From: Neoechinorhynchus agilis
Taxonomy: Eukaryota > Animalia > Acanthocephala
Reading direction: 5' to 3'
Assembly (NCBI GenBank): GCA_051530055.1
Contig: CM121341.1
Location: 7,914,784-7,978,783, forward strand
Length of the DNA stretch: 64,000 nt
In this document: positions 15,424-64,000 of the stretch, in pieces
How positions within the stretch are numbered: position 1 is the stretch's first letter
Layout: the number at the start of each line of letters is the position of its first letter
Notes under the pieces: generated by a model
Seen by the model: only the letters and a program-made list of their open reading frames with translations
Told to the model about the DNA's origin: nothing
Databases searched by the model: none
Position numbers and translations under genes: made by a program

Positions 15424-15446
15424 CTTTTAATTGAAAGTCAACGCGA

Positions 15447-39917: not shown

Positions 39918-42906
39918 ATGTGCTTCGATCGCATTTCAGATGAAAAATTGATACCTATGTATGGATGGAATTTATACACAATTATTCGTTTTTGTCTTTT
40001 ATCCCTAGTCATATTACTCGTATTAGTTGGCCTCATTGGAAACACAATTTCTCTGTTTCTATTCACAAAGGGAGATATATGTGGTGAATGAATATTTCGT
40101 GCGGTTTATGGTCTCTCCTCAAGTCAAACGAAATCAACCCGACACTTCTCAGCCATATTCTATTTAATGGTTGAGAAAATAGAGATTAATTCCACTTTTT
40201 CGCAATATTTCTTAAGTTTCGTCGGACTTTTTTTGGTCTTAAAGGTGGATGTAGAGTTTTTGTTTAATGATTGAGAAAATAGAAATCACAAATTCTCCTT
40301 TTTTACAATATTTATTAAGTTTCGTCGGACTTCTTTAGGTCTTAAAGGTGAATGTAGAGTTTTTTGTTTAATGATTTAGAAAATAGAGATTAATTCTCCT
40401 TTTTCACACGCAATATTTCTTGAGTTTCGTCGGACTTCTTTAAGTCTTAAAGGTGGAGGTTAGTTTTTTATTCTGTGAATGAGAAAATAGAAATCACAAA
40501 TTCTCCTTTTTTACAATATTTATTAAGTTTTGTCAGACTTCTTTAGGTCTTAAAGGTGGAAGTTAGTTTTTTGTTTAATGATTTAGAAAATAGAGATTAA
40601 TTCCCCTTTTTCACACGCAATATTTCTTCAGTTTCGTCGGACTTCTTTAAGTCTTAAAGGTGGAGGTTATTTTTTTATTCTGTGAATGAGAAAATAGAAA
40701 TCACAAATTCTCCTTTTTTACAATATTTCTTAAGTTTCGTCGGACTTTTTTAGGTCCTAAAGGTGGATGTATAGTTTTTTATTCTGTGATTGAGAAAATA
40801 GAGATCATAAATTCTCCTTTTTCACACGCAATATTTCTTAAGTTTCGTCGGACTTCTTCAGGTCTTAAAGATGGATGTATAGTTTTTTATTCTGTGATTG
40901 AGAAAATAGAGATCATAAATTCTCCTTTTTCACACGCAATATTTCTTAAGTTTCGTCGGACTTCTTCAGGTCTTAAAGATGGATGTAGAGTTTTTTATTC
41001 TGTGATTGAGAAAATGGAGATTAATTCTACTTTTTCGCACGCAATATTTCTTAATTTTCGTCGGACTTCTTTAAGTCTTAAAGGTGGATGTAGAGTTTTT
41101 TGTTCGATGATTGAGAAAATAGAGATCACAAATTCTCCTTTTTCACACGCAATATTTCTTGAGTTTCGTCGGACTTCTTCAGGTCTTAAAGGTGGAGGTT
41201 AGTTTTTTATTCTGTGATTGAGAAAATAGAGCTTAATTCCCTTTTTCGCAATTCAGATTGTTTCGCAAGTTTGTTGTTTAGTTCGTTGAAGCAACAAAAT
41301 TGCGAAACAACCTGAAGATGCCCGACGAGACGGACGAAATATTGTATGAAATGTATTAATCTCTATTTTCTCAATCACCAAGCAAAATATATCCGTGAAC
41401 AACTTTTCAACTAGGCGAGATTATTTCTAGTGCAAATTCTATCGAAAATTAGCGATTCTTATTTTTAAGTTCCACATCAAAGCCAAGTTCTTTTTTCCGT
41501 CTCTGATAAATGTAAGTTTTCCGTGATTTCGAGATTCACATATCGATTCATGCGGTTCGATCTGATTTTTTTAACAGTTCGAATTAAATAGGATTTATGT
41601 TATTTCTGAGTTTTAGTAAAACACCAAATATTACCCAAAAATTTTCTTAAAATGATTAAAAAAATGAATTATGGAAGAGGAAGCGACACTATAGCAAATA
41701 AAAAATAACCCTTTTATTTCTACGTATCTTTTTAGTTGTTTCTAATTTTAAATTTTCTTAATTGTGTAAGCCCAAAAACTTCGCATTATTGTGTAATTTC
41801 AGCAAAAAAAGCCTATGTTGAATTTTCGATTAGAACTATAAGAGATCAATCGAAGACACTAAAACCTTTCGTCTCATTATAAACCGCATGAGAAATATTC
41901 GTTCATGTTAAAGCGGACATCGTTTGCAGTTGTAATGATTGCCCTATCCCTGGGTAATTTATGTAAGATTATAGTGTCCTATATGGTAAATATCACATTT
42001 GAAATTCTCCGGAAACAACGCAGCGCCAGCAATGATCAACTGTGCCAACTTCTTGAACTTTTGGATATTTGCTCCTCTTACGCTGTATCCCAAGCTCTAG
42101 TCTTTTTAGCGATTATCCGCTTAGCCGTCTTTACGGGCTCAAGGGGACTTATTTCATACGCTCATAGAAGCAAATTCCTAACATTCGCCATTATTGCTGG
42201 AATGGCCGTCTTCACAAGTCTTAACATCGGCTTCGTCGTTCGTAATTTTGGTGTTTTAAAGCTAAAGATTAACACTGAAGGTATGACGACCAAGATTTGT
42301 CTTTACAAAAACCAAATTTCAAACTACGTTTATTTCGCTGAACTTCTTTTATTCTATTCGATCATTCCAGCTGCTTGTATGACCATGTTCAGTATCGTTA
42401 TTCACCGAGTAATCAAGCCAATTCGCAACAGGTCTCGAAAAGATCCCGCAATCAATAAGAAAATGCAACAACACCAACAAACCAATGTCGCCTTCTTTTT
42501 TCTAAGTATGCTTCATTTTGTATGTACGATTCCTTATATATTAGTCTGGCTCTGGATCACTATTCGACCATTAGACTTTCGATTGTATGCTTTCCCAGTT
42601 CATATAGCCAAGTTCGCTTACTACATCGGAGTCATAAATCATTCGGCCAATGTATATTTGTGTGCTTTGACCAGTAAAGCCATTCGACAGTACGTAAAGA
42701 GCTTCTTTATTATCAACATTCGGAATGAACCCAATATTGCCGACAAGACATCCAATCTCGATAATAATCCGTTTCAGACAAGCTTCCAGTTACCCAGCAG
42801 CTTCGTGTCCACAGCTCCCAGTCAGGAAAAAACCTTCCCGGATGGCAGTCTCACGAAGTTTTTCCCAAGCTCATTCAACTTTCACGTAGAGTCCAGCGAA
42901 GTGTAA
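39918..42906 (+). CDS. Class A (rhodopsin-like) peptide-type GPCR, 2 exons with an array-filled intron of about 1.85 kb
   Basis: Exon 1 (about 39918-40083) encodes TM1 LLVLVGLIGNTISLFLF; the 41905 ORF encodes TM2-7 (LCQLL..LAIIRL, FVCTIP, INHSANVYL). Exact splice junction uncertain. Confidence 0.8.
40165..41380. repeat. Tandem array (about 107-bp unit, about 10 copies) ending in a family-B foldback (41213-41380)
   Basis: gattgagaaaatagag repeats about every 107 bp; inverted arm attaatctctattttctcaatca at about 41355-41378; CTGAAGA-T-GCCC..GGAC-GAAATATT at 41312-41343. Confidence 0.9.
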
Positions 42907-44494: not shown

Positions 44495-45840
44495 GGAATA
44501 TTTCTTGGACTTTCTCTACATGGTTGATTTTTTCCGGAATCGAATGAAATCGTGCTTAAAACCTTGAAACAAACGGTAATGAGTTTGTATGGATCCCTTT
44601 GGATTCTCAGAACCCTCCTCCCGAGGAGGAGGAAGGATTCATCAGTGAGTTTTCTCTTCCCTTCAGCAGTAACGCGCAGTTTAAAGATCAGTTCTCATAA
44701 TGGCTTTACAGAAAGACTACTTTTACAAATTTAATAGGCCAGAAAGCATTGATCGATACACTTTTCATTAACTGAGAATCTTAAGAAATTAATACGAAAG
44801 GGAATATCTCTTGGACTTCCTCTACACGGTTGATTTTTTCCGGAATCGAATGAAATCGTGCTTAAAACCTTGAAACAAACGGTAATGAGTTTGTATGGAT
44901 CCCTTTGGATTTTCAGATCTTTCCTCCTGAGGTGGAGGAGGGACTCATCAGTGAGTTTTCCTAGGACTTCATTCAGTTCTCATAATGGTTTTACAGAAAG
45001 ACTACTTTTACAAATTTAATAGGCCAGAAAGCATTGATCGATACACTTTTCATTAACTGAGAATCTTAAGAAATTAATACGAAAGGGAATATCTCTTGGA
45101 CTTCCTCTACATGGTTGATTTTTTCCGGAATCGAATGAAATCGTGCTTAAAACCTTGAAACAAACGGTAATGAGTTTGTATGGATCCCTTTGGATTTTCA
45201 GATCTTTCCTCCTGAGGTGGAGGAGGGACTCATCAGTGAGTTTTCTCCTAGGACTTCATTCAGTTCTCATAATGGTTTTACAGAAAGACTACTTTTACAA
45301 ATTTAATAGCCAGAAAGCATTGATCGATACACTTTTCATTAACTGAGAATCTTAAGAAATTAATACGAAAGGGAATATCTCTTGGACTTCCTCTACATGG
45401 TTGATTTTTTCCGGAATCGAATGAAATCGTGCTTAAAACCTTGAAACAAACGGTAATGAGTTTGTATGGATCCCTTTGGATTCTCAGAACCCTCCTCCCG
45501 AGGAGGAGGAGGAAGGATTCATCAGTGAGTTTTCTCTTCCCTTCAGCAGTAACGCGCAGTTTAAAGATCAGTTCTCATAATGGCTTTGCATAAAGACTAC
45601 TTTTACAAATTTAATAGGCCAGAAAGCATTGATCGATACACTTTTCATTAACTGAGAATCTTAAGAAATTAATACGAAAGGGAATATCTCTTGGACTTCC
45701 TCTACACGGTTGATTTTTTCCGGAATCGAATGAAATCGTGCTTAAAACCTTCAAACAAACGGTAATGAGTTTGTATGAATCCCTCTTGGATTTTCAGATC
45801 TTTCCTCCTGAGGTGGAGGAGGGACTCATCAGTGAGTGAT
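44495..45840. repeat. Tandem array, 285-308-bp units, 5 copies, derived from LINE coding sequence
   Basis: ggaatcgaatgaaatcgtgcttaaaacc at about 44536, 44842, 45127, 45414, 45722; homologous to 11727-11860. Confidence 0.92.
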
Positions 45841-46216: not shown

Positions 46217-49200
46217 ATGGAAATCAACGAACTTCTTGTAGATTATCAGCAACTCGTAGAACAAGGCCATCGCGCAGTCGCCGAATGGCTCAAGCAAGTT
46301 TCCCACTACAGCCAGGAATCTTACGACGAGACAGCTAATCGTATACAGCATCAGGGTCACATTAGAGCTATTCTGAGAAACCTGATTCAGCTTATCGATT
46401 CAGATCTCGGAAATGTATTCCACCATCTCATATCTACAAGCATTTCACAACTACTTAGAAATCACGACTCCATGCTTTTATTGGACGTAATCAATAAATG
46501 CAATAAGACAATCGAAAAATCCAAGTATAAAATGTAAGCACGGAAACATTAAGACTGTAAAAATTCAAAACTAGTTTAATAGATGCGCTCTTACAGTACT
46601 TGTTAATGTCTACCAATATCTCAATCGATCCGCTGGTCACTCGTCTGAAGAAACGGTTTCTATTTGTTCAAAAATATTCTATTCTGGCAAACTTGGTTGT
46701 GATTGTGTGAGTTACTTTCATTAATAATGGGGTTTTTTCAAACTTGTTTTAGTCGATGCAATCAATGCTAAAATCTTCAAGGTTTGCTCAATTGTAATTG
46801 AGGAATCAAATGCACGCAATCGTTTAATTCACCAATCAATTCTTAAAATGGTCCAAAGAGCGCTGAGTAGCCCAAAAGAGTGTTTTGGAATTCTCGATTC
46901 CGTGGCTCAAACTTTATGCAACCTTGTGAAATCCAATTCGTCCCTCCTGGTTTCCACGGATTTGGAAAAAATGATCTTTATCTTATTGGATTCAGTTGCG
47001 TTCTCGGTTTGGACCGAAGATAGTGGATCCAAATGGATTTCCATTTCAGAGTCATTGGCTAGCCTCTGCTTGTCCAAAAAAGGTGGAAATATCGAAGGTG
47101 AGAACTGTCATAAATCTATTCTTGTGCTGACTTAAATTTTCGGAAATAGAATCGCTCAAGTATGTCAGTGATACTCTGCTTCTATATGCCAATAAGAAGA
47201 AACCATTACAACAATCGACTAATAATACAAAAGTCGCCAACCAAGTTACAATGTTGTCGTTGGTAAGGAAAGCTTGCGACTCAAATAAGTTGTTTTTTGG
47301 CGTAACAATTAAAATGATTTTATTTTAAATTCGGCACACGAGTAGATCTCAGTACTTCCCGGACTCCTTTCCCTCAATTGAAAAAACTAACCTGTTTACT
47401 AGTCTAAAATGAGGACTTAATTACACAATAATTTCCAGTTTGTCTTTTTGAATTAAATTAGTGAATAAAATATAAAAAGCTTTTTGCAGGGATTTAGTTT
47501 TATCAGAATAGGATCAGGCCTGATATTTAGTGCCCTCGCTTTTAAAGAGATTAAAATAAATTTCATTGTTAAAAAATAAAAAATTTATTGGCTGGAAAAT
47601 GAGGAGAATAATACCAGATTTTAAGGGGACTTCGATTTGGGAACGATGACCTTTTTTAAAATGTTCTCAAGTTTTTTAATAAAATGATTGAAAAAGGGCA
47701 ATCGAAATTCAGGAAGACGTCCCTTTCCAAAGAAACATAATGAACCTCCTAAAAGCGTAATTAAAATTCTATAAATATAATTAAAAGTGAGCGCTTTATA
47801 AAATATTCCAGAGAGCGAGGAATTAATAAAAAAAACGTTGCCTATTTGATGGAAAATTTATGCCAAGAATCTTGTGAGCGTTTATCACAAGGTTGTTAAA
47901 GTGTTTAAGTGCGGTTTTAATACTTTCACTTTAATTTCTTCGTGCCAGAAAACAATCAAAATGAATAATTTTAATCTTCAAACACTCAAATAAGTGCTCA
48001 GTTTAATTTTCGATTTGTTTCGTCCACTTACTGCTCGATTTGTTCATAAAAAATATCAAGAAAATCCTCAATTTTAAGTCCGTCGCCCATTAACTTAAAA
48101 AATATGGGTCTTTGTGGGTTTTCGCCTTCAATTTTTTTAAGAATGAATGCGTTTGCTGCCAGAAAACAATCAAAATGAATAATTTTAATCTTCAAACACT
48201 CAAATAAGTGCTCAGTTCAATTTTCGATTTGTTTCGTCCACTTACTGCTCGATTTGTTCATAAAAAATATCAAGAAAATCCTCAATTTTAAGTCCGTCGC
48301 CCATTAACTTAAGAAATATGGGTCCTTGTGGGTTTTCGCCTTCAATTTTTTTAAGAATGAATGCGTTTGCTGCCAGAAAACAATCAAAATGAATAATTTT
48401 AATCTTCAAACACTCAAATAAGTGCTCAGTTTAATTTTCGATTTGTTTCGTCCACTTACTGCTCGATTTGTTCATAAAAAATATCAAGAAAATCCTCAAT
48501 TTTAAGTCCGTCGCCCATTAACTTAAGAAATATGGGTCTTTGTGGGTTTTCGCCTTCAAATTTTTTTAAAAATGAATGCGTTTGCTGCCAGAAAACAATC
48601 AAAATGAATAATTTTAATCTTCAAACACTCAAATAAGTGCTCAGTTTAATTTTCGATTTGTTTCGTCCACTTACTGCTCGATTTGTTCATAAAAAATATC
48701 AAGCAATCCTCAATTTTAAGTCCGTCGCCCATTAACTTAAGAAATATGGGTCTTTGTGGGTTTTCACCTTCAATTTTTTTTTAAAATGAATGCGTTTGCT
48801 GCCAGAAAACAATCAAAATGAATAATTTTAATCTTCAAACACTCAAATAAGTGCTCAGTTTAATTTTCGATTTGTTTCGTCCACTTACTGCTCGATTTGT
48901 TCATAAAAAATATCAAGCAATCCTCAATTTTAAGTCCGTCGCCCATTAACTTAAGAAATATGGGTCTTTGTGGGTTTTCGCCTTCAAATTTTTTTAAAAA
49001 TGAATGCGTTTGCTGTTAGAAAACAATCAAAATGAATAATTTTAATCTTCAAACACTCAAATAAGTGCTCAGTTTAATTTTCGATTTGTTTCGTCCACTT
49101 ACTGCTCGATTTGTTCATAAAAAATATCAAGAAATCCTCAATTTTAAGTCCGTCGCCCATTAACTTAAGAAATATGGGTCTTTGTGGGTTTTCGCCTTCA

Positions 49201-52200
49201 AATTTTTTTAAAAATGAATGCGTTTGCTGCCAGAAAACAATCAAAATGAATAATTTTAATCTTCAAACACTCAAATAAGTGCTCAGTTTAATTTTCGATT
49301 TGTTTCGTCCACTTACTGCTCGATTTGTTCATAAAAAATATCAAGAAAATCCTCAATTTTAAGTCCGTCGCCCATTAACTTAAGAAATATGGGTCTTTGT
49401 GGGTTTTCGCCTTCAAATTTTTTTAAGAATGAATGCGTTTGCTGTTAGAAAACAATCAAAATGAATAATTTTAATCTTCAAACACTCAAATAAGTGCTCA
49501 GTTTAATTTTCGATTTGTTTCGTCCACTTACTGCTCGATTTGTTCATAAAAAATATCAAGAAAATCCTCAATTTTAAGTCCGTCGCCCATTAACTTAAGA
49601 AATATGGGTCTTTGTGGGTTTTCGCCTTCAAATTTTTTTAAAAATGAATGCGTTTGCTGCCAGAAAACAATCAAAATGAATAATTTTAATCTTCAAACAC
49701 TCAAATAAGTGCTCAGTTTAATTTTCGATTTGTTTCGTCCACTTACTGCTCGATTTGTTCATAAAAAATATCAAGCAATCCTCAATTTTAAGTCCGTCGC
49801 CCATTAACTTAAGAAATATGGGTCTTTGTGGGTTTTCGCCTTCAAATTTTTTTAAAAATGAATGCGTTTGCTGCCAGAAAACAATCAAAATGAATAATTT
49901 TAATCTTCAAACACTCAAATAAGTGCTCAGTTTAATTTTCGATTTGTTTCGTCCACTTACTGCTCGATTTGTTCATAAAAAATATCAAGAAATCCTCAAT
50001 TTTAAGTCCGTCGCCCATTAACTTAAGAAATATGGGTCTTTGTGGGTTTTCGCCTTCAATTTTTTTAAAATGAATGCGTTTGCTGCCAGAAAACAATCAA
50101 AATGAATAATTTTAATCTTCAAACACTCAAATAAGTGCTCAGTTTAATTTTCGATTTGTTTCGTCCACTTACTGCTCGATTTGTTCATAAAAAATATCAA
50201 GAATCCTCAATTTTAAGTCCGTCGCCCATTAACTTAAGAAATATGGGTCTTTGTGGGTTTTCGCCTTCAAATTTTTAAAATGAATGCGTTTGCTGAGAAA
50301 ACAATCAAAATGAATAATTTTAATCTTCAAACACTCAAATAAGTGCTAGTTAATTTTCGATTTGTTTCGTCCACTTACTGCTCGATTTGTTCATAAAAAA
50401 TATCAAGAAATCCTCAATTTTAAGTCCGTCGCCCATTAACTTAAGAAATATGGGTCTTTGTGGGTTTTCGCCTTCAAATTTTTTTGAAAATGAATGCGTT
50501 TGCTGCCAGAAAACAATCAAAATGAATAATTTTAATCTTCAAACACTCAAATAAGTGCTCAGTTTAATTTTCGATTTGTTTCGTCCACTTACTGCTCGAT
50601 TTGTTCATAAAAAATATCAAGAAAATCCTCAATTTTAAGTCCGTCGCCCATTAACTTAAGAAGTATGGGTCTTTGTGGGTTTTCGCCTTCAAATTTTTTT
50701 AAAAATGAATGCGTTTGCTTTTAATTTTTTTAAACGAGTGCTTTTACAATTGATTACCGTGCAATTTAGACACTAACAAGACTTTCCAATCGTATATTTG
50801 AAAACATGGAATTCTATCAACTTCTACCCTTGCTTGTTTCCACTTGTCTCAGTATCGGCAAATCTTGCTCAAACAACGCCCTAAGCCGTCATTCTCGGAA
50901 ATGCGTTAATTTCCTCTTCAATCACATTATTTACCGCTATAATGGGATCGACAATTGTTCGCGATTGATTGCTCTAGTAACCGAGAGTACAGTGAAGGCA
51001 GCGTTGATGATTGTTGCAAATCAAAATCGCAGATCTGGTACGGATTCCAAGGAGCTAAGAAGTTCTCAAAACATCCTTCTTTGTTCAATCGGGCAACTCG
51101 CTAGACTCGTAATTGAAGTAGACGACAACATTGCTAAAGTTATCGATGATACATCAATTGGGTTTCTACACACAATTCAGACTATTTTACAAACGAGAAC
51201 TCGTAGCATTCAACTTTCAGCTGCTAATCTTGTTTGGGAGATTACTAAAGTCGTTCCGAATGCAATCAAGACTCTCGTTATGAAACAATGGCTTCCACGT
51301 TTGGATTCAAGTGGAGAACGAGAAGGTTATTCTTATTGCTCGGCTGCAGCTATTTACGCGAATAAAGAAACTCGTGCCTTTCCTCAGGGTGCAATTGAGG
51401 TTTGATATGCTTTTTCGATAAAATGAACTTAAAACAATTCTCATCTGATAGGTTGCTCATTCGATCGCACAAGATTTGATAAAAGCACAACGGTGTTTGA
51501 AACCGGACCAAAGGAAAGCATCGTCCATTCATTCTGGATGGGTATTAATTTCCTCAACCGTGGACCACCTCCTCCTTCAAAAGTTGGTAAAACTTATTGT
51601 GAACCCTTTTTTTTGATTTTACAAAAAGCGACGAGAACTTCACGATGAATGGGAATTTCTTAACTTCAGAACAAGCAATATCCGCTGTTGTTGATCTTAT
51701 AGAACAAGACTTCCTTTTTGGTATGAAAAATTTCGATTGTATGACTTTGATTGGAAAACTTGGAGCTCTTACATGTAAGTTGTTGACAGTTAAGCGAACT
51801 TGTTGTTTTTGAACAAAGCAAACAAAAGTGAAGCTTTATCGCACAATTGGCTTCAACCAAGGTCGTCAAAGTGCACATCGTCCTAGTCAAAAAAAAGAAA
51901 TAGTTTTTGCAATTATTATGGTTTTTGCTTAAAGACGTTCTGTGAACCTCGTCGGGTTCATCATCTGTTCTAAAATACAAGTGGATAAGTGTATAACTGA
52001 TAATGAACCAAACGAGGTTCACAGAACGTCTTTTTAATCGAAATAATCATTTACCGCTCGGTTGTAGACTTCTAACCATAATAATTCTCTAATCACATTC
52101 CACCCCCCCCGGTACCTCACATATCGACATTTTTGAAATAGTTTTTAAATTTTAATAGTTCGACAACAATTGGAATTAGATTTTTTGAAACATGCAATAA

Positions 52201-55200
52201 TGATTAAATCTGTCTTTATTCTTTTTAGGCTATAAAACTATTATTGAGCACAATATCTTCCCCAAAATCACATCCAATCGCCGAGTTGTCGTTTCGAAAG
52301 CATTATCTTATCTTATGGCATACAACGAGTTATCTTTTTTACCACAACCAGCACCGATTGATGACCGAACTCAGTACCTCCGCAGTCTATTTGAACTTCG
52401 ACTACTACAAGTCCTTCGTCTTCAAATGAGCTTTCATAAACTTTCAGGTAAGTTCATTAAAGAGCAAATTTACGCCTTTTGAATTTAATTCCAATAGTTA
52501 CAGTAAAGAAATGGATTCAAAACCGCTTGTTAATCAACGTCCTATTAGGTCCGTTGACAGACGAAGCTCTCATCTTACAGTCTCCTGAAGCTCAAGGGGA
52601 CTGTGCTCTTTGTATTCAAACTGAAATCTATGCCAATATCCTCCCCGTAAATTCTCGTGTCCTTTCATCTATTGATTCATCGTTAATTAGTCTTGAAATA
52701 AGTCAGAGGTTCTTGTTCTAGTTTAATGATTAAGAATCTATGGCAAAGACGAGTCCGAAAGGGATATGTACAACTTTGTAGATAGTGGAAATCACCACAG
52801 TGTCCTTATGGATATATCGTTTAATTCGGCTCAGTTGTTATGTCAAATGGCGAATTATAAATGTGATGCTTTAAATGATATATGGATAGAAGTATTGAAG
52901 ATGCAGAATCTTAAGTCATCAATCTCTGACTCTAATGAAAAATATCCGGTTCTGTGGATGGCTTGTGTAATTGTTGAACGAATGCGATTCGACGATTCTA
53001 TCGATTGCCGGTCGCTTGAAACTGCTCTAAAGGATGCATTGTTCGATCGTGCTATGGATAATAATGAAAAACTTAGTGTTCGGATGCATTCTGCTAAAGT
53101 CCTTGGAATATTGTGTAGGCGAGCTAAACGACCAACTTGGTTACCAACTCTATGCGAGATTTTAAAACATAAAATTGCTGCCGAGACTGATGGACCAAGT
53201 CGGATTGTTGAGATTTATTCCGTTGCGGTGCTTTATAGGAATTGTAGTGGATACCAAAGGACAGATTGGGATTCAGTTGTAAATCTTTTTATCAACGTCG
53301 TCAAGGTTGAAACCAACATATACGTTCAGGTTTGTAGTCGAATTTTTTAAGCTTTATCTCGTTTCTAAGAATTTGTCTAACACTTTCAAAATTTATCTTT
53401 CTCTCTAACGAACGATTTCTATTCGTTTTTAATGATTATTATTAATATCCATTAACAAAATCGGAATGAAAAAAACCCACACTTTAAAATATTTCAGAAG
53501 CTCGACTTTTAACAAGTTCCATAATCATTTTAAGAAGTTTCAAGTCTCTTAGGACACTTGAAAATAGGCAAAGTTTTACAAAAACAGACGATTTTCATTT
53601 GATATCGCTGATGATGTTCTTTGATTTTACGATAAAAAACTGTTTAGACGTGGGTACTTCGATCTCTCGGTCTAATAATCGACGGTTGCGGTCTAATGTA
53701 CCTTCCTCGTACTTTAAGTATAAAATATTTCAGAAGCTCGACTTTTAACAAGTTCCATAATCATTTTAAGAAGTTTCAAGTCTCTTAGGACACTTGAAAA
53801 TAGGCCAAGTTTGACAAAAACAGACGATCTTAATTTGAAATCGCTGATGATGTTCGTTGATTTTACGATAAAAAACTGTTTAGACGTGGGTACTTCGATC
53901 TCTCGGTCTAATAATCGACGGTTGCGGTTTAATGTACCTTCCTCGTACTTTAAGTATAAAATATTTCAGAAGCTCGACTTTTAACAAGTTCCATAATCAT
54001 TTTAAGAAGTTTCAAGTCTCTTAGGACACTTGAAAATAGGCAAAGTTTGACAAAAACAGACGATCTTAATTTGATATCGCTGATGATGTTCGTTGATTTT
54101 ACGATAAAAAACTGTTTAGACGTGGGTACTTCGATCTCTCGGTCTAATAATCGACGGTTGCGGTTTAATGTACCTTCCTCGTACTTTAAGTATAAAATAT
54201 TTCAGAAGCTCGACTTTTAACAAGTTCCATAATCATTTTAAGAAGTTTCAAGTCTCTTAGGACACTTGAAAATAGGCAAAGTTTGACAAAAACAGACGAT
54301 CTTAATTTGAAATCGCTGATGATGTTCGTTGATTTTACGATAAAAAACTGTTTAGACGTGGGTACTTCGATCTCTCGGTCTAATAATCGACGGTTGCGGT
54401 TTAATGTACCTTCCTCGTACTTTAAGTATAAAATATTTCAGAAGCTCGACTTTTAACAAGTTCCATAATCATTTTAAGAAGTTTCAAGTCTCTTAGGACA
54501 CTTGAAAATAGGCAAAGTTTGACAAAAACAGACGATCTTAATTTGATATCGCTGATGATGTTCGTTGATTTTACGATAAAAAACTGTTTAGACGTGGGTA
54601 CTTCGATCTCTCGGTCTAATAATCGACGGTTGCGGTTTAATGTACCTTCCTCATATTAATGTTACAATGATGCTTTTGATCGGAGTGCTTCTCAATCATT
54701 CGGTCGATTCAACGGTCGACGATGAAAACCGGATAAAGCAGAGTATAATGAGGATACTTGCATCGTGTATAACCCTCATCGGTCCCGAAATCAAGGACTC
54801 AACATGGTCACAATTTAGACACGATACTCGTTTTGTTTGTTCAATGATCATGAGTAGTTCTACTGAAATGGGATTAAGTGATAATATTTCCCATTCAATC
54901 TATCTTTACTGTCTTGAACAACTCCATATTTTTTGTCCTGATGAATTCAATTTACAAGATATCCTTTGTCAGTTGTGGGTTAGTTTTTAGTCAGAAAGTT
55001 ACTATTATCTTTCACACTCTTTTTGTTTTAGATTGGACTTCAAAGTGATGATTTCATTATAAGGTGCAAATCACTTCAGTGTTTAAGACAGTTGTGCCAA
55101 CGAGAAGCCTATTGTGTATCTGATTATATCAGCAAATTGGATAACGATCGTGTGGCTGCACTTGAAGGTTTGTTAACTTCCTCGTGAAAATAAGTTTCAT

Positions 55201-58200
55201 ATTGTCTCATGGAAAAATTATTATTGTTGATCGACAAACTGTTGAAATGAAATTTTTTTTTAAATTATATTATCATTTTGAATAGATAATCCATTGTTAT
55301 TTGTCGATAGGAAAAAATAAATGAAATTAAGATTTTATTGGATATTTCGATCCACTATCTCGGATCCGCGTGAATTCAATCGCTGAAGAAGAGCCGAGAT
55401 AGTGGATCGAAATATCCAATAAAATCTTAATTTCATTTTGAAAAGATAATCCATTGTTATTTGTCGATAGGAAAAAATAAATGAAATTAAGATTTTATTG
55501 GATATTTCGATCCACTATCTCGGATCCGCGTGAATTGAATCGCTGAAGAAGAGCCGAGATAGTGGATCGAAATATCCAATAAAATCTTAATTTCATTTTG
55601 AAAAGATAATCCATTGTTATTTGTCGATAGGAGAAAATGAAATTAAGATTTTATTGGATATTTCGATCCACTATCTCGGATCCGCGTGAATTGAATCGCT
55701 GAAGAAGAGCCGAGATAGTGGATCGAAATATCCAATAAAATCTTAATTTCATTTTGAAAAGATAATCCATTGTTATTTGTCGATAGGAAAAAATAAATGA
55801 AATTAAGATTTTATTGGATATTTCGATCCACTATCTCGGATCCGCGTGAATTCAATCGCTGAAGAAGAGCCGAGATAGTGGATCGAAATATCCAATAAAA
55901 TCTTAATATTTTGAAAAGATAATCCATTGTTATTGTCGATAGGAAAAAATAAATGAAATTAAGATTTTATTGGATATTTCGATCCACTATCTCGGATCCG
56001 CGTGAATTGAATCGCTGAAGAAGAGCCGAGATAGTGGATCGAAATATCAATAAAATCTTAATTTCATTTTGAAAGATAATCCATTGTTATTTGTCGATAG
56101 GAAAAAATAAATAAATTAAGATTTTATTGGATATTTCGATCCACTATCTCGGATCCGCGTGAATTGAATCGCTGAAGAAGAGCCGAGATAGTGGATCGAA
56201 ATATCCAATAAAATCTTAATTTCATTTTGAAAAGATAATCCATTGTTATTTGTCGATAGGAGAAAATGAAATTAAGATTTTATTGGATATTTCGATCCAC
56301 TATCTCGGATCCGCGTGAATTGAATCGCTGAAGAAGAGCCGAGATAGTGGATCGAAATATCCAATAAAATCTTAATTTCATTTTGAAAAGATAATCCATT
56401 GTTATTTGTCGATAGGAGAAAATGAAATTAAGATTTTATTGGATATTTCGATCCACTATCTCGGATCCGCGTGAATTGAATCGCTGAAGAAGAGCCGAGA
56501 TAGTGGATCGAAATATCCAATAAAATTTCATTTTGAAAAGATAATCCATTGTTATTTGTCGATAGGAAAAAATTGAAATTAAGATTTTATTGGATATTTC
56601 GATCCACTATCTCGGATCCGCGTGAATTGAATCGCTGAAGAAGAGCCGAGATAGTGGATCGAAATATCCAATAAAATCTTAATTTCATTTTGAAAAGATA
56701 ATCCATTGTTATTTGTCGATAGGAGAAAATGAAATTAAGATTTTATTGGATATTTCGATCCACTATCTCGGATCCGCGTGAATTGAATCGCTGAAGAAGA
56801 GCCGAGATAGTGGATCGAGATATCCAATAAAATCTTAATTTCATTTTCTCCTATCGACAAATATATTATCATTTGTTGGGTTGTCGAAATAAAAAGTCAA
56901 ACAGTATCCTTGCCATAAAATCGATATAATTTCATGTTTTTAGAGTATTTGTTCCACATGCTCGATCGGGAAAGAGATGAAAAGTTTAAAGAAGAAGTTA
57001 AGGATACACTATATTTACTCCTATTATCCGTCTCACCTCTAACAATGTCCATGTGGATTTCACTTCTATCTCGCATATTAATTTCAAGTGGAGCGATTCT
57101 GAATACTTCTCAAAGTATACAATCGGAAAAGGATAATGATCATGAAGATGACGATAGCGTTCTCAAACGAGACGAATCCAGCATCCATGGTCGGTCAAGA
57201 GAAATTGGAGGGTTTTGTGGATGGAGAAGTCGATCGTTTGCCGCTGAATGTGTACTGGAGCTCCTCGGGGAAGGCCAAATGCCTAAATTAAAAGATCCTA
57301 GCCACTACATGATAGACGAAGCCAAATCTAACCGAAAAGCGAATCCTGATCATTCATATTTGGTTCTACATATTTCTGATTTAATCCGATTGGCATTTAT
57401 GTCGACCACATCGTCGTCCTCCACCTCCGCTGCTCATTATGGGCTACGTATATTGATGGCAATCGTTGATTTGTTTGGAAATGTAAAAGACGAAGACGAG
57501 TATATCCTTAGTCAGCATGATACTCAGATTACAACAGCGATTTATCGCCTTCTCGAATCTTTGAATGAAGAAACGCTTCAGACTATGATCTATGATCTTT
57601 GTGCCAAATGGCTTTGCTCTACCGCTGCGATATCAAAATCAAGACTTTTGAAGGCGTTGTCAGATCGTTTCAGTTCCAAAGAAATACCTGGCGACAGTGA
57701 AGATTCGACAGCCATCAATGATTCCAATCGGATCAAGAACTACTTAGCCATGGTGCTTTTCTGGGCCAAAATGTACCTAAAAAATTCTAATCTTGTCGAG
57801 GACCAGTCAACGTGGCTCTTAACAAAGCTTGGACAACTTTGGGTTGAGACAATAATTGCTATTTATGACAATGATTGTAAATTATTCGCGACTCATCAAC
57901 CAATTGCGATCTTGCTGTGCTCATCAGCTAATCTACTAAAAAGAGGTGGATATAAAAGCGAATTTCATGTTTCAACCTACACGAAAAAACTACTTCACAA
58001 GGCTGTCCTTGTGAACCATACAAAAATCAATTCGAAGGATATTTTCGATATTATTTTAGGTAATAAGATCTTCTCAGTTAATGTAATTTTTCGATGTTCC
58101 AAATCTCATGTAAACTCAACGCTGATCAATAGCGATCATTATAATCTTGAGTGGCTTCGTGCTTTAGCTCGGTTACATAGAGAAACGAGCCCCGATCTTA

Positions 58201-59486
58201 GCTTTAATTTCATCCATAAAAAACCTCAGTTCGGGCAAAATTATGACATCTTCAAAAAAGAAACGATTTCTTTAATTTTTACGCTGAACGAAAAATTCCT
58301 CGGTCCGTTTTTACTTCTATTTTGTCAGATCAGGACGTTGAAGCATTTAGACAGTCAAAAAATCTTTTAAATCATCCTTACTTCTTCGCAGGAAAAACAG
58401 TTCAAATGCTCGATGATATGAACGTGAATAACATCGATACACAATACCAACTCGTTGAAACATTGATTGTCCTGGTGAACGCTCCACAGTCAGCCTTAAT
58501 TGATTACCAATCAGTATTACAACTGATAACATTGGCGCATAGGTTCGATCTTATTCGACATTTGAGTTCATTAACTCGACTTTAGATTGGGAAAGCGATT
58601 CAGGGAAGTTGCCAATGAACTGCTGAACTCAATATTAGGATCTATTGTTCAAAATAAAACTCTGATTTCAAAGGAAGTTGAATCACTTGGTTTCATTGGT
58701 CTTGAACCAATCGGTAAAAACTGTTCGGATTGCGATATCGCGAATGAAATGAAACGAGTTAAGATTTGCCTTGAGATTCGGCAAAATCGCGAATGGAAAC
58801 ACGGCGATGTATTTGAGTCGAAAGTCTTAAATCAGATTCTATCTCTTATAATAGACGAAAGGACATTTAGTGGATCCTACGATGCCCTTGGATATCTATG
58901 TCTAAGGTCTCAGCAATACCTCCTGATCAAAGTATCCAATCAGCTAGACAAAAAACCGAATCTATTCACAAAGGTCGTCATGATTATTCGTTACTGTTCC
59001 AAAGTTCCTAGTGAGGTAGTTGAGAGCATGCGGAGTTGTGGCGAGCGATTACTGCTGTCCGAAGATTCTAAAATTCAATCCCAGTGTCTTTTATCGATTT
59101 CTACTTTGTTTGTTCACGAATGTCAAAGTATGAGACGAACTGTTGGAGCAATGTTTCTTCGGTTCATCGAAACCCTCGAACGAGGAGATAAAATGCAAGG
59201 AATAATGCAGATCTGCGCTCTCGCTTATATTTCCTCCTTTTCTGAGAGGAACAAAAGTATGGATTGGTTTCGCTGCTGTTTTGATCATTGGATCTATTTA
59301 GGGCAAATCCTTATTCAATACATTATCACAAAATTCACATTTTTACAAATACCAACTATGGAAATTAGTATTCGCTATCAAGCTGAATACGAACACGTCC
59401 TAACAAATGCTGAATTGCCAATACAAGGCGCAAGTATTCGTACGAAGCGATCCGTTAGTCCGATTGACCTTAATAAATTCTTGTAA
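46217..59486 (+). CDS. HEATR5: HEAT repeat-containing protein 5 (HEATR5/Laa1), multi-exon with three array-expanded introns
   Basis: N-terminal ELLVD..EWL..KCN; YVQ/TWVLRSLGLIIDGCG; CITLIGPE; CLEQLHIFCP; CLRQLCQREA; LFHMLDRE; WRSRSFAAEC; LVLHISDLIRLAFM. Large introns at about 47270-50769, 53330-54591, 55170-56944. 3' end approximate. Confidence 0.85.
47944..50719. repeat. Intronic tandem array, about 214-bp unit, about 13 copies
   Basis: gccagaaaacaatc at 47944, 48158, 48372, 48587 and onward. Confidence 0.97.
53485..54652. repeat. Tandem array, 236-bp unit, 5 copies, each containing the HEATR5 splice acceptor and 61 nt of exon
   Basis: Unit starts at 53485, 53721, 53957, 54193, 54429; tttag/acgtgggtac acceptor ends at 53647, 53883, 54119, 54355, 54591. 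Confidence 0.95.
55266..56874. repeat. Intronic tandem array, about 157-bp palindromic unit, 10 copies, one hammerhead-like core per unit, 13-bp flanking direct repeat
   Basis: gataatccattg at 55286, 55445, 55605 through 56697; arms of about 45 bp around a 30-nt loop; tatattatcattt at 55266-55278 and 56862-56874. Confidence 0.95.
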
Positions 59487-59814: not shown

Positions 59815-62145
59815 TGTTTAAATTTGACTAGAATTATTGTTTAGAAGTCTTCATTTGGTCGTCTTTTAGTGAGCAAAAAACTTAGGATGAACTTGACGGG
59901 GTTGGTAGAGAACGTTTTTAATAAACTCTTTACTGCAAGTGAAGACTTCTATACCATTATTCTAGTTTATCGGCTTTTTTGTTTAAATTTGACTAGAATT
60001 ATTGTTTAGAAGTCTTCATTTGGTCGTCTTTTAGTAAGCAAAAAACTTAGGATGAACTTGACGGGGTTGGTAGAGAACGTTTTTAATAATCTCTTCACTG
60101 CAAGTGAAGACTTCTATACCATTATTCTAGTTTATCGGCTTTTTTGTTTAAATTTGACTAGAATTATTGTTTAGAAGTCTTCATTTGGTCGTCTTTTAGT
60201 AAGCAAAAAACTTAGGATGAACTTGACGAGGTTGGTAGAGAAGGTTTTTAATAAACTCTTTACTGCAAGTGAAGACTTCTATACCATTATTCTAGTTTAT
60301 CGGCTTTTTTGTTTAAATTTGACTAGAATTATTGTTTAGAAGTCTTCATTTGGTCGTCTTTTAGTAAGCAAAAAACTTAGGATGAACTTGACGAGGTTGG
60401 TAGAGAACGTTTTTAATAAACTCTTTACTGCAAGTGAAGACTTCTATACAATTATTCTAGTTTATTGGCATTTTTTGTTTAAATTTGACTAGAATTATCG
60501 TTTAGAAGTCTTCATTTGGTCGTCTTTTAGTAAGCAAAAAACTTAGGATGAACTTGACGGGGTTGGCAGAGAACGTTTTTAATAAACTCTTTACTGCAAG
60601 TGAAGACTTCTATACCATTATTCTAGTTTATCGGCATTTTTTGTTTAAATTTGACTAGAATTATTGTTTAGAAGTCTTCATTTGGTCGTCTTTTAGTAAG
60701 CAAAAAACTTAGGATGAACCCGACGAGGTTGGCAGAGAACGTTTTTAATAAACTCTTTACTGCAAGTGAAGACTTCTATACCATTATTCTAGTTTATCGG
60801 CTTTTTTGTTTAAATTTGACTAGAATTATTGTTTAGAAGTCTTCATTTGGTCGTCTTTTAGTAAGCAAAAAACTTAGGATGAACTTGACGAGGTTGGCAG
60901 AGAACGTTTTTAATAAACTCTTTACTGCAAGTGAAGACTTCTATACCATTATTCTAGTTTATCGGCATTTTTTGTTTAAATTTGACTAGAATTATTGTTT
61001 AGAAGTCTTCATTTGGTCGTCTTTTAGTAAGCAAAAAACTTAGGATGAACCCGACGAGGTTGGCAGAGAACGTTTTTAATAAACTCTTTACTGCAAGTGA
61101 AGACTTCTATACCATTATTCTAGTTTATCGGCTTTTTTGTTTAAATTTGACTAGAATTATTGTTTAGAAGTCTTCATTTGGTCGTCTTTTAGTAAGCAAA
61201 AAACTTAGGATGAACTTGACGGGGTTGGCAGAGAACGTTTTTAATAAACTCTTTACTGCAAGTGAAGACTTCTATACTATTATTCTAGTTTATCGGCATT
61301 TTTTGTTTAAATTTGACTAGAATTATTGTTTAGAAGTCTTCATTTGGTCGTCTTTTAGTAAGCAAAAAACTTAGGATGAACCCGACGAGGTTGGCAGAGA
61401 ACGTTTTTAATAAACTCTTTACTGCAAGTGAAGACTTCTATACCATTATTCTAGTTTATCGGCTTTTTTTGTTTAAATTTGACTAGAATTATTGTTTAGA
61501 AGTCTTCATTTGGTCGTCTTTTAGTAAGCAAAAAACTTAGGATGAACTTGACGGGGTTGGTAGAGAACGTTTTTAATAAACTCTTTACTGCAAGTGAAGA
61601 CTTCTATACCATTATTCTAGTTTATCGGCATTTTTTGTTTAAATTTGACTAGAATTATTGTTTAGAATTCTTCATTTGGTCGTCTTTTAGTAAGCAAAAA
61701 ACTTGGGATGAACCCGACGAGGTTCCTAGAGAACCTTTTTAATAAACTCTTTACTGCAAGTGAAGACTTCTATACCATTATTCTAGTTTATCGGCTTTTT
61801 TTGTTTAAATTTGACTAGAATTATTGTTTAGAAGTCTTCATTTGGTCGTCTTTTAGTAAGCAAAAAACTTAGGATGAACTTGACGGGGTTGGCAGAGAAC
61901 GTTTTTAATAAACTCTTTACTGCAAGTGAAGACTTCTATACCATTATTCTAGTTTATCGGCTTTCTTTATTTAAATCTTACTAGAATTATTGTTTAGAAT
62001 TCTTCATTTGGTCGTCTTTTAGTAAGCAAAAAGCTTAGGATGAACTTGACGGGGTTGGTAGAGAACGTTTTTAATAATCTCTTCACTGCAAGTGAAGACT
62101 TCTAAACAATTATTCTAGTTTATCGGCTTTTCTTGTTTAAATTTG
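59815..62145. repeat. Tandem array, about 165-bp unit, about 14 copies, each with 26-bp terminal inverted repeats (MITE-like)
   Basis: ctagaattattgtttagaagtcttca ... tgaagacttcta(tacc/aaca)attattctag; unit starts at 59826, 59991, 60156 and onward. Confidence 0.95.
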
Positions 62146-62551
62146 ACAATTTTCTGCGACTAGTCAGCGGTCAGTACCATGACAAAATTCTCGTTTTTCG
62201 ATTTTGTAATAACTTTGCGATATTACGGCTTTATTTTTTTAAACCCAGATTTAACCAAAGAGAATTCATTTTCGTTGACTTTCTGGAGAATAAATTTTAC
62301 TAGTGAATACTCGATAGCACACCAAATCGTAAAATCGATAATTCGTTTAAATATCTCGCAGTTTAAGTTTAAAATAAAACAAGCAATAGTCTCGGACCAG
62401 TTCGGAATTGTTTATTTGTGTAGTAGGTATTGTTCACTCTCAATAAAAAGAACAGCATGAAAGCGTAGCATTTTTCACAGCATGAATAAGAGTGATGAAT
62501 CGTTTTCTTAAAAACCTTTTACTTTCTCTTCATTTCAGAAGTATCTGGACT

Positions 62552-63151
62552 ATGATCGACGTTCTAAACATTGCTTATTATTTGCTATTTGCAACATCCG
62601 CTTATTGGTTAATCACGGACTTCGGAATGGTCATGGCTTATGCGCTTCTAGACTTAAGCCCTGACCTCAGTTCCTTGTTCCGCTTTGGGAAATCACGAGC
62701 GCACTTGGAAGGAGCAAAATGGATCGATCAATTTAAAGGGATGATCGTAAGCAAACGATACTTTTTTCTTTTTTATATTGTCGGTATAATAGCCGCTCTT
62801 GCGTTTTTGGCGACCTCAAAACATCTGAACGTCATCCCATTGAGCTATTATTTACTATTGGCTCATATCGTCCATCGGTTATTCGAAACCCAATACTTGA
62901 GATCTCAACGCTGTTCGAAATCCGAGATGAGCTTTCTACACCTTATCTACGGTCTTACATTCTATCCAATCGCATTTGCAACCATTTATTCTTACCATGC
63001 CATCCACTTTGTTCAATATGAACACTCGCTGAAAACGATCGTTATTGTGATGTCGCTCTTTTTCATAACTTCACATGAACAATTTCGATGTCATGAGATA
63101 GTGCACGGATCAACGAATCGTTGGGAAAATGAACGTCAATCAATAACGTAA
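62552..63151 (+). CDS. SRD5A3: Polyprenol reductase (SRD5A3/DFG10 family), 5' part; 3' exon(s) not in window
   Basis: LFRFGK, VSKRYFFLFYIVG, HIVHRLFET, MSFLHLIYGLTFY, EQFRCHEI; the conserved C-terminal region is missing. Confidence 0.85.
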   Translation: MIDVLNIAYYLLFATSAYWLITDFGMVMAYALLDLSPDLSSLFRFGKSRAHLEGAKWIDQFKGMIVSKRYFFLFYIVGIIAALAFLATSKHLNVIPLSYYLLLAHIVHRLFETQYLRSQRCSKSEMSFLHLIYGLTFYPIAFATIYSYHAIHFVQYEHSLKTIVIVMSLFFITSHEQFRCHEIVHGSTNRWENERQSIT

Positions 63152-64000
63152 AGATCCTCTCTTTTTTGAATATCTCCCTAAAATTTATTTGCAAAAAAAC
63201 ATTCGTAAAAGCGGGTTTTGGTGGCTATTTCATTGGAAAAAAGAAGACTATTCCGTTGGGAAAATTACAGTCAATCAATAATGTAAAGATAGTCTTTTTT
63301 TGAATAGCTGTTTCAAATTTATTGGAAAAAGCATTCGTAAACGCGGGTTTTGGTGGCTATTTCATTTGAAAAAAGAAGACTATTCCGTTGGGAAAATTAC
63401 AGTCAATCAATAATGTAAAGATAGTCTTTTTTTGAATAGCTGTTTAAAATTTATTAGAAAAAACATTCGTAAAAGCGGGTTTTGGTGGCTATTTCATTTG
63501 AAAAAAGAGGACTATTCCGTTGGGAAAATTACAGTCAATCAATAATGTAAAGATAGTCTTTTTTTGAATAGCTGTTTCAAATTTATTAGAAAAAACATTC
63601 GTAAACGCGGGTTTTGGTGGCTATTTCATTTGAAAAAAGAAGACTATTCCGTTGGGAAAATTACAGTCAATCAATAATGTAAAGATAGTCTTTTTTTGAA
63701 TAGCTCTTTTAAATTTTTTAGAAAAAACATTCGTAAAAGCGGGTTTTGGTGGCTATTTCATTTTAAAAAAGAAGACTATTCCATTGGGGAAAATTATAGT
63801 CAATCAATAAGGTAAAGATAGTCTTTTTTTGAATAGCTGTTTCAAATTTATTGGAAAAAGCATTCGTAAAAGCGGGTTTTGGTGGCTATTTCATTTGAAA
63901 AAAGAAGACTTTTCCGTTGGGGAAATTACAGTCAATCAATAATGTAAAGATCCTTTTTTTGAATATTTCCTTTAAATTTATTTGGAAAAAAATTCATAAA
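63118..64000. repeat. Tandem array, 132-bp unit, at least 6.5 copies, running off the window
   Basis: ttccgttggg at 63251, 63383, 63515 and onward. Confidence 0.95.

Follow-up and report, generated by a model that had tools for sequence, protein, structure and literature searches.

Minimal hammerhead ribozymes have been described in the terminal repeats of Penelope-like elements (PLEs), present as thousands of dispersed copies in metazoan genomes (Cervera & de la Pena 2014, PMC4209133). It is mainly with this class that we compare here a tandem array of ten hairpin units in a predicted HEATR5 intron of the acanthocephalan Neoechinorhynchus agilis (assembly GCA_051530055.1, contig CM121341.1, positions 7,914,784 to 7,978,783; this 64-kb stretch is called the window, and positions are counted from its first letter). 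We think it rather probable that the array is a decayed PLE-type minimal-hammerhead insertion that was amplified at the DNA level and now is an inert relic. In the class as described, an extra unpaired nucleotide between A9 and G10.1 is a regular feature, and a G10.1-C11.1 pair and a palindromic 15.2-16.2 stretch without helix III are found consistently, although both lie outside the descriptor used in that study. Helix II is long, with 6-8 bp, and helix I comprises 4-5 bp. Single motifs showed no cleavage, and dimers and trimers cleave weakly (PMC4209133).

Canonical PLEs carry their hammerheads in terminal repeats, and their insertions have a characteristic anatomy, with strong 5' truncation, an adjacent inverted 5'-truncated copy, a target-site duplication (TSD) of variable length and a short extension at one end, the tail, which usually has 30-40 nt (Craig et al. 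2021, PMC8557442). For Pomphorhynchus laevis, another acanthocephalan, the same study reported hammerhead-bearing families, namely Neptune and Penelope/Poseidon. The present locus extends PLE minimal hammerheads and retrozyme-like arrays to an acanthocephalan, a phylum for which no description of either was found in the literature searched.

Non-LTR retrozymes (LTR, long terminal repeat) are the second system of comparison. They have a low GC content, a TSD of more than 4 bp and canonical hammerheads with loop-loop contacts (Cervera & de la Pena 2020, PMC7229834). A recent preprint describes tandem hammerhead units of 51-972 bp, mostly in no more than 7 copies and often intronic, and relates non-LTR retrozymes to the terminal regions of PLEs, as derivatives of the pseudo-LTR (pLTR) (Li et al. 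2026, 10.64898/2026.07.22.740005). More distant counterparts are newt satellite 2 and Schistosoma Sm-alpha, which are likewise genomic repeats (tandem or SINE-like) with type I hammerheads; in newt satellite 2, helix III is short and the ribozyme acts as a dimer. Both are canonical, recognised by Rfam and catalytically competent, whereas the array gave no Rfam hammerhead match at E<=10. An extra A in the same position, between A9 and G10.1, is known from the hammerhead of chrysanthemum chlorotic mottle viroid (CChMVd; De la Pena & Flores 2001, cited in PMC4209133), but that viroid hammerhead is of type III, has stable helices and stands in an unrelated context.

The array and its hammerhead motif

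The host intron is predicted at 55169..56944 (+), with GT...AG ends, a length of 1776 nt and splice sites that were derived from the sequence. The reading frame stays open when 55168 is joined to 56945 (GT at 55169, AG ending at 56944), and the exon open reading frame (ORF) 3' of the array matches Pfam PF20210 (Laa1/Sip1/HEATR5) with 5e-20 on the + strand, from which it follows that the array lies in a sense-strand HEATR5 intron. A word-indexed search of 5.8 billion proteins returned no homologue of this exon ORF (478 aa, 56934-58370, +) at E<=1e-3, which means either that the N. agilis gene model is not indexed or that the protein is very divergent. Without the array the intron would measure ~180 nt; the insertion and one TSD copy account for ~1.6 kb of the 1776 nt.

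Tandem Repeats Finder (TRF) reports a single array at 55273-56847 with a period of 156, 10.0 copies and 95% matches. When they are cut at their junctions, the units have 150-160 bp, and the GC content of the array is 0.33-0.36. Each unit consists, in this order, of loop 2/tail, arm A (an antisense copy), loop 1 and arm A' (a sense copy), and an inverted-repeat search gave arms of 48-49 nt that are 98% complementary and separated by a 24-nt loop. Loop 2/tail begins with GAAAAGATAATCCATTGT TATTTGTCGATAGGAG..., and loop 1 (24 nt) reads CGCGTGAATTGAATCGCTGAAGAA. Ten tandem palindromic units, a 13-bp flanking direct repeat and a position in a sense-strand HEATR5 intron had all been claimed in the initial annotation of this DNA, and all of them were recovered here; for the flanking repeat, ~1e-4 chance matches are expected in the flanking windows. 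The features of the locus are as follows.

55266..55278 (no strand): left 13-bp TSD-like direct repeat, TATATTATCATTT
55279..55297 (+): non-palindromic tail of 19 nt, TGAATAGATAATCCATTGT, at the 5' end of the insertion
55280..56847 (+): tandem array of ten units, from TRF and unit alignment
55319..55366 (+): arm A of unit 1, an inverted 5'-truncated copy (inverted-repeat pair I10, 48 nt, 98% complementary)
55367..55390 (+): loop 1 of unit 1, CGCGTGAATTCAATCGCTGAAGAA, unique 5' portion of the sense copy
55379..55420 (+): minimal hammerhead motif of unit 1, AUCG-CUGAAGA-A-GAGCCG-AGAUAG-UGGAUC-GAAA-UAU-C17-CAAU, a descriptor match
55391..55438 (+): arm A' of unit 1, sense copy, reaching from helix II to ~25 nt past the cleavage site (pair I10)
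56048..56049 (+): lesion of unit 5, one of two C (C17/C1.1) deleted, GAAATATC-AAT, from unit alignment
56710..56774 (+): inverted copy of the last unit, full length, 65 nt (inverted-repeat pair I1, 97% complementary to 56799-56863)
56775..56863 (+): full sense copy of the last unit, 89 nt, made up of loop 1, arm A' and the terminal CTCCTATCGACAAATA
56819 (+): lesion of unit 10, invariant core A14 to G (GAAA to GAGA), from unit alignment
56841..56847 (+): TCATTTT in arm A', 7-nt microhomology with 55273-55279, putative duplication junction
56862..56874 (no strand): right 13-bp direct repeat TATATTATCATTT, its first 2 nt overlapping the palindrome end

The sequence CTGAAGAAGAGCC occurs ten times in the array, at 55383, 55543, 55699, 55859, 56015, 56172, 56328, 56484, 56635 and 56791, and the full string CTGAAGA-A-GAGCC-GAGATAGT-GGATC-GAAA-TATC is first read at 55383-55416, as annotated initially. 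In unit 1, loop 1 contains the 5' strand of helix I (AUCG), the CUGAAGA box and the extra A, and the predicted cleavage site lies between 55416 and 55417; the other nine CTGAAGA positions carry the motif in register. The catalytic boxes C3U4G5A6N7G8A9, G12A13A14 and U16.1-H17 stand in type I order and are complete in 8 of the 10 units. One of the two lesioned units is the last, whose GAGA had already been noted; the base that changed is A14 and not A13. The other is unit 5, in which the loss of a C destroys helix I or the register of the cleavage site. This loss had been missed, so that the earlier count of nine units with the full motif holds for GAAA but not for the motif as a whole.

With the minimal hammerheads of PLEs the motif shares the type I arrangement, the CUGANGA/GAAA/UH boxes, the unpaired nucleotide between A9 and G10.1, the G10.1-C11.1 pair and the absence of helix III. 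The extra A (CUGAAGA-A-G) is present in 10 of 10 units, and the G10.1-C11.1 pair (G...C-GAAA) in all units and at all four hammerhead loci of the window. Positions 15.2-16.2 are palindromic in GAA-A UA U-C, where AUAU is self-complementary. Helix I forms three of four pairs (AUCG/CAAU: C-G, A.C, A-U, U-A) and has no extension beyond, as the initial annotation had conceded. The extra A after A9, the missing helix III and the 4-bp helix I might be taken for caveats, but since they are published features of PLE minimal hammerheads, they are rather hallmarks of the class. Points of difference are the present mismatches in helix II (G.A) and helix I (A.C), the location inside a tandemly amplified hairpin unit, and the array's lack of an identified PLE ORF or pLTR. 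We assign the motif to the PLE minimal-hammerhead class. It displays most of the features by which this class is defined, with imperfect helices I and II, and its linkage to a PLE and any catalysis are putative.

The two arms of the unit preserve different versions of helix II. In the sense arm it spans six positions with a G.A mismatch at 10.3-11.3 (GAGCCG) and has -0.9 kcal/mol, whereas the antisense version GAUCCG/UGGAUC is a perfect helix of 6 bp with -5.5 kcal/mol. The perfect GATCC/GGATC stem that had been reported in the opposite arm is indeed there, as a local hairpin GATCC-N8-GGATC of arm A with -5.2 kcal/mol, set against GAGCC...GGATC in the sense arm. Arm A copies the sense arm in inverted orientation and therefore records an earlier state of helix II and can be regarded as a built-in fossil of the ribozyme's original helix.

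Hammerhead motifs in the window and the question of chance

A strict descriptor was defined with a helix I of 4 nt and at least 3 pairs, CUGANGA, 0-1 extra nucleotides, a helix II of 4-6 bp with at most 1 mismatch, GAAA, a self-complementary A-NN-U, H17 and the 3' strand of helix I. Beyond the array, it matched three sites in the 64-kb window, at 18788 (+), 8050 (-) and 4492 (-). With the array collapsed to one unit this gives 4 sites, compared with 0.023 in 300 dinucleotide-preserving shuffles. As shuffles may under-represent AT-rich palindromes, a control with permuted boxes on the real window sequence was added. Among 180 permutations of CUGA.GA, the true box gave 4 sites, 178 boxes gave 0 and one box gave 1, and eight alternatives to the GAAA box gave 0 sites. 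Both controls indicate that the hammerhead-type motif is specifically enriched in the window, and they support the view that the array core is a genuine hammerhead-class motif of the PLE minimal type; in this form the hammerhead core of the initial annotation stands. A relaxed descriptor was discarded, as its null was too noisy, with up to 5 sites for permuted boxes.

The Infernal search that had been proposed as a check of the array yielded no match. The Rfam hammerhead models (Hammerhead_1, _3, _II, HH9 and HH10) had no match at the gathering threshold in the whole window and none at E<=10 on the 1.9-kb array stretch or a 281-nt dimer. They also had no match at E<=10 on the loci 4492, 8050 and 18788. 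Being blind to all four loci, these models exclude a canonical hammerhead but not one of the minimal class. Matches to plant MIR families in Rfam were set aside as generic long-hairpin matches, with equal scores on both strands and far below threshold (best microRNA match MIR7533, 65.5 bits against a gathering threshold of 230).

As alternative to a genuine ribozyme motif, the array could be a palindromic satellite or a repeat resembling a miniature inverted-repeat transposable element (MITE), in which a chance CUGAAGA...GAAA...UC was copied ten times by tandem amplification. The silence of Rfam even at E<=10, the three of four pairs in helix I and the mismatch in helix II would suit this explanation. 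So would the fact that nine of the ten occurrences are mere copies, the marginal similarity to the other hammerhead loci, and a descriptor that was built around the array candidate. However, the chance expectation is ~0.02 per window, permuted boxes give 0-1 sites, and Rfam is blind to the other three loci too. Coincidence would also have to explain the additional nucleotide, the G10.1-C11.1 pair, the palindrome at 15.2-16.2 and an ancestral helix II that is perfect in the antisense arm, and the asymmetric tail, the TSDs of 13 and 11 bp and the inverted-copy architecture of two other hammerhead loci are not accounted for. We therefore consider a chance origin improbable.

The first of the other loci, at 4412-4620, is a near-perfect palindrome of 209 bp (arms 4412-4515 and 4517-4620, 104 nt, 92% complementary, 1 nt between them) whose two arms each bear a minimal hammerhead motif, one per strand, in the form CUGAAGA-A-GG...GCC-GAAA. 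The minus-strand motif is intact under the strict descriptor, and in the plus-strand motif U16.1 is changed to A. The palindrome is flanked by an 11-bp direct repeat, AAGTTTTTTGT (4393-4403 and 4620-4630), which is a candidate TSD, and has a short left tail. A further hairpin at 4208-4319 (47-nt arms, 89% complementary, 18-nt loop) lies ~100 bp upstream of it and contains no hammerhead motif under the strict or the relaxed descriptor.

At 7967-8141 there is a hairpin with arms at 7967-8024 and 8084-8141 (58 nt, 95% complementary) and a 59-nt loop. Its minus-strand motif, 8054-8014, reads GUGA-CUGAGGA-GGCGAGGUUACCUCCUUC-GAAA-UAUU/UCAA and lies in the loop and the right arm. The layout matches that of the array unit, in that the hammerhead-bearing sense copy is preceded by an inverted copy; a TSD was sought at this hairpin and none was found. 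The site at 18784-18819 (+) is a solo minimal hammerhead, AUGA-CUGAUGA-GGAUUAAUAUUUC-GAAA-UAUU/UCAU; all pairs of its 4-bp helix I are formed, and its surroundings lack an inverted repeat.

The loci 8050, 4492 and 18788 are clearly interrelated (z 7-9). The flanks of 18788 are similar to those of 8050 (z 8.6) and 4492 (z 7.1), including a shared upstream TAATCTTTCTTC(G/A)GA. Helix I has 3-4 of 4 pairs at these loci, and 4492, with its pair of motifs on opposite strands, shares the CUGAAGA-A-GG form. Close dual motifs on opposite strands and many dispersed, highly divergent copies per genome are again known from PLE minimal hammerheads. Helix II differs in sequence at all four loci, yet its pairing and G10.1-C11.1 are kept, an observation that rests on four loci; the ten array units are too similar to inform on helix covariation.

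A fifth candidate was seen in a 285-bp tandem array at 44688-45837 (-), where three of four units (~45832, 45236, 44951) carry CUCA-CUGAUGA-G-UCCCU...AGGAG-GAAA-GAUC/UGAA. It comes near to the canonical CUGAUGAGUCC...GGACGAAA, from which it departs by a G.G at 10.1-11.1, and the fourth unit is without GAAA. The motif was found by the noisy relaxed descriptor only and had no Rfam match, and it is probably due to chance or badly decayed.

Insertion architecture and amplification

The hairpin structure of the unit is readily rationalized from the way in which PLEs insert. Read off the last unit, the order of the insertion is TSD (13 bp), tail (19 nt), inverted copy (65 nt), sense copy (89 nt) and TSD, and the hammerhead is found ~40 nt from the 3' end of the sense copy, which probably represents the 3' end of the parent retroelement. 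The tail recurs, as GAAAAG..., within loop 2 of every unit. The locus 4412-4620 repeats this order with its 11-bp TSD and 104-nt arms. Canonical PLE insertions (PMC8557442; Evgen'ev & Arkhipova 2005, as cited there) show the same 5' truncation, inverted copy, tail, variable TSD and terminal hammerhead. In the array, however, the sense copy has merely 89 nt, lacks an ORF for reverse transcriptase (RT)/GIY-YIG and has been amplified tenfold. Based on this anatomy, the antisense arm is best read as a by-product of insertion and not as a purpose-built switch, so that the dedicated off switch suggested in the initial annotation is not upheld.

A MITE or other DNA transposon was also considered and rejected. 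Symmetric terminal inverted repeats that abut a TSD of fixed length are not seen, as the 19-nt tail stands between the left TSD and the inverted repeat. Both the asymmetric tail and the differing TSD lengths at two comparable loci (13 and 11 bp) argue against such an element.

The junctions between the units tell how the array may have grown. Internal junctions read ...AATTTCATTTT/GAAAAGATAATCC..., and the left edge ...TATCATTTT/GAATAGATAATCC.... The TCATTTT at 55273-55279 is composed of the end of the left TSD and the first base of the element, and the same 7 nt occur in arm A'. The terminal 16 nt of the sense copy, CTCCTATCGACAAATA, are present in this orientation in the last unit only and are absent from the nine internal units. 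This pattern indicates a single insertion that was duplicated at the DNA level between two TCATTTT sites.

We infer the following order of events. A heavily 5'-truncated, hammerhead-bearing PLE-type element, or a non-autonomous derivative of one, would have entered the ~180-nt HEATR5 intron by target-primed reverse transcription, leaving the 13-bp TSD, the 19-nt tail, the inverted 5'-truncated copy (arm A) and then the 89-nt sense copy; the predicted empty site is ...AAATTATATTATCATTT/GTTGGG.... After the insertion, a change of U10.3 to G in the sense copy would have weakened helix II, while the antisense arm kept the original. The segment from just past the left TSD to the TCATTTT of arm A' may then have been duplicated by unequal exchange or slippage at the 7-nt microhomology, and would have expanded to ten copies by ordinary tandem-repeat dynamics, as in 15 unrelated sequences of the same 64 kb. 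In the pre-mRNA the array would fold into ten 48-bp hairpins.

Tandem amplification is indeed common here. Sixteen tandem arrays lie in the window; their periods range from 84 to 370 bp and their copy numbers from 2 to 25, and together they cover 19.85 kb or 31% of the 64 kb. The fifteen others have mostly 90-100% identity, and several lie inside HEATR5 introns:

Other arrays 1-8: 1-764, 3769-4108, 13201-13548, 15446-17076, 21302-21713, 25696-26017, 29156-30481, 31750-32959
Other arrays 9-15: 34179-36706, 40161-41247, 44688-45837, 47943-50719, 53485-54652, 59815-62147, 63119-64000

Among the 16, the HEATR5 hairpin array alone has a hammerhead under the strict descriptor, and its unit is exceptionally self-complementary (z -9.5 vs -3.7 to +1.9 in the other 15). 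As these 15 were amplified without a hammerhead, the context favours amplification at the DNA level.

A different origin would be that of an active non-LTR retrozyme. Its array would have entered as a multimer made from circular or tandem RNA and would be transcribed with the intron or from a promoter of its own; neighbouring hammerheads paired through AUAU would cut at AUC/C, and the rod-like RNAs of ~157 nt would be ligated to circles, which a PLE RT recopies into new sites. The array has much in common with such elements: small AT-rich units in head-to-tail arrangement, each with a type I hammerhead of a genuine motif class, no LTR, primer-binding site or polypurine tract, a TSD of more than 4 bp, a link to PLE terminal regions, and an intronic location. 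Its unit size falls into the range of 51-972 bp and its copy number is typical; moreover, the tandem spacing suits dimer formation, and the RNAs of retrozymes and viroids typically fold into rods. In contrast to non-LTR retrozymes, which have canonical hammerheads with efficient cleavage, the array has a weakly active minimal type, now decayed and degraded in helix II, in a unit that is a near-perfect hairpin including an antisense copy. The contacts between loop 1 and loop 2 that define the canonical type I hammerhead in the 2020 study are missing, as there is no closed helix I loop. The array as a whole does not correspond to a monomeric circular RNA template either. With the terminal CTCCTATCGACAAATA outside the repeating unit, it is not wholly readable from one 157-nt circle without an extra event, and the junction falls into microhomology with the host target, so that the ends and junctions of the array are better explained by one insertion that was duplicated as DNA than by multimeric cDNA. 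No further copy of the unit was found within the 64-kb window or in metagenome contigs, and tandem amplification is generic in this genome. We thus regard an active retrozyme as unlikely, also in view of the lesions and folding energies described below. The term retrozyme-like remains justified insofar as the tandem units, the low GC content and the 13-bp TSD fit the operational description, but not with respect to a canonical hammerhead or a single circular template, and the locus is probably best called a retrozyme-like, DNA-amplified relic.

Between the array and the 3' splice site, the sequence ATAAAATCGATATAATTTCATGTT at 56908-56932 (+) is similar to ATAAAATCTTAATTTCATTTT, the distal part of arm A'. 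Aligned locally with arm A', it has z 3.7, which is reached by <=0.6% of shuffles, and the likeness could be due to a decayed partial copy or to target-site similarity. The left flank showed no significant similarity to the unit (z about 1).

Folding, probable inactivity and further features of the window

Two adjacent units fold into long duplexes with a minimum free energy (MFE) of -146.8 kcal/mol (z -17.8), and the minus strand behaves alike. The ribozyme fold was modelled as a monomer with helices I and II forced and the core unpaired, as an intramolecular double hammerhead is a pseudoknot and thus beyond nested-structure folding. In the full unit this forced fold costs ~50 kcal/mol relative to the hairpin, and even with the antisense arm deleted it is still ~10 kcal/mol above the best fold. 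The antisense arm is, in addition, transcribed ahead of the ribozyme. As isolated monomers, the four motifs of the window have weak hammerhead folds of +2.4 to -1.8 kcal/mol (array +1.8), which fits the reported inactivity of single minimal hammerheads (PMC4209133).

The mutations within the array give no hint of a preserved function. Eleven mutational events were counted in the ten units, and 2 of them fall into the 42-nt motif, compared with ~2.9 expected by length. The core is thus not depleted of mutations among the ten units, and both motif mutations hit essential positions (A14 and C17/C1.1). Indels in the arms of units 4, 6 and 8 are uncompensated in the partner arm. There is no sign of selection on either the ribozyme or the hairpin since the amplification, in a test that has low power with so few events. 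Ribozyme cleavage, if any, would be negligible according to the folding model, and today the array is most likely an inert relic. The release of 157-nt linear or circular RNAs from the intron, as envisaged in the initial annotation, is disfavoured by the degraded sense helix II, the lesions in 2 of 10 units and the fold penalty of 50 kcal/mol. The same penalty, the antisense arm that is made first and the two lesioned units without constraint stand against an active retrozyme, and the RNA-circle origin is disfavoured by the junctions and by the 15 arrays that were amplified without a hammerhead.

Several points weigh against a decayed, DNA-amplified PLE insertion and have to be considered together. 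No PLE ORF or parent element lies within the 64-kb window, the tail has 19 nt instead of the usual 30-40 nt, and the array sense copy has marginal similarity to the other three loci (z 1.8-2.8). The latter suggests that the array element belongs to a different, diverged family and means that its family assignment rests on motif and architecture; we infer the PLE parentage from these. The descriptor was modelled on the array candidate, for which reason the array is no independent match to it and the other three sites are. Insertion in multimeric form with a subsequent snap-back at the end is a less likely alternative. The folding energies, being nearest-neighbour values, leave tertiary contacts, helicases and co-transcriptional folding out of account, and zipping might be slowed by local hairpins, which can form in both arms. 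Finally, the copy number relies on a hybrid long-read assembly. A simple assembly artefact is disfavoured by unit-specific variants, and the exact number of copies is left to the assembly.

Two further explanations start from the hairpin itself. The locus could be a source of hairpin RNA, with ten duplexes of ~48 bp that are diced to endogenous small interfering RNAs (endo-siRNAs), edited or bound by double-stranded RNA-binding proteins, and that silence the parent family or modulate HEATR5 splicing, the hammerhead being irrelevant. It is supported by near-perfect hairpins of extreme stability, which form on either strand (MFE of two units -147 kcal/mol, z -17.8), and the sense intronic position ensures transcription with the host gene. 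Tandem hairpin loci (hpRNA) give endo-siRNAs in Drosophila, which also counts in its favour. Nevertheless, the arm indels of units 4, 6 and 8 are uncompensated, the Rfam microRNA matches are generic, and the structure is fully explained as a by-product of insertion; we see only a slim chance for such a role.

The second explanation is a hairpin-type retrozyme, which captured the inverted copy in its unit and in which each minimal hammerhead is gated by its own antisense arm; the existence of such an element has a very low probability in our view. Its mode of action in the HEATR5 pre-mRNA would consist in unwinding of the arm by helicases, editing or local hairpins, which lets neighbours dimerise and frees hairpin or circular RNAs of ~157 nt, and this is similarly doubtful. 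If it were true, the RNAs would be transposition intermediates or siRNA precursors, and the array would represent a so far undescribed, self-gated form of ribozyme array.

With the decayed, DNA-amplified insertion as the preferred explanation, the array raises no new mechanism and no long-standing question, but its origin would be unusually legible, as a single PLE-style insertion with readable TSD, tail and inverted copy was apparently followed by duplication at a microhomology. It calls for caution in surveys that take every tandem hammerhead array as evidence of rolling-circle retrotransposition. For the host, a small intron would have become ~tenfold larger and able to form ten long RNA duplexes.

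Some other features of the window were noted. On the minus strand at 697-1433, a tRNA gene or tRNA-like sequence (1354-1433, Rfam tRNA, 60.9 bits) is directly followed downstream by an RT fragment (697-1341, Pfam RVT_1, 6e-12), which overlaps the end of the 370-bp tandem repeat at 1-764. This is the sole RT fragment of the window; its RVT_1 match is generic, and it has no close homologue in the protein collection, where one distant match from outside N. agilis was obtained. Three paralogous ORFs occur in tandem at 17207-17821, 22992-23513 and 27260-27646 (+). The first two have Chromo domains (~2e-15) and the third a weak CBX7_C match, and all share the C-terminal motif ...RGRPSFAQKR...FIEC..REGF, so that a chromodomain (HP1/CBX-like) gene seems to have expanded locally. 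The N. agilis protein ACOME3_001888 shares 99% identity with a KRR1 exon at 10463-11107.

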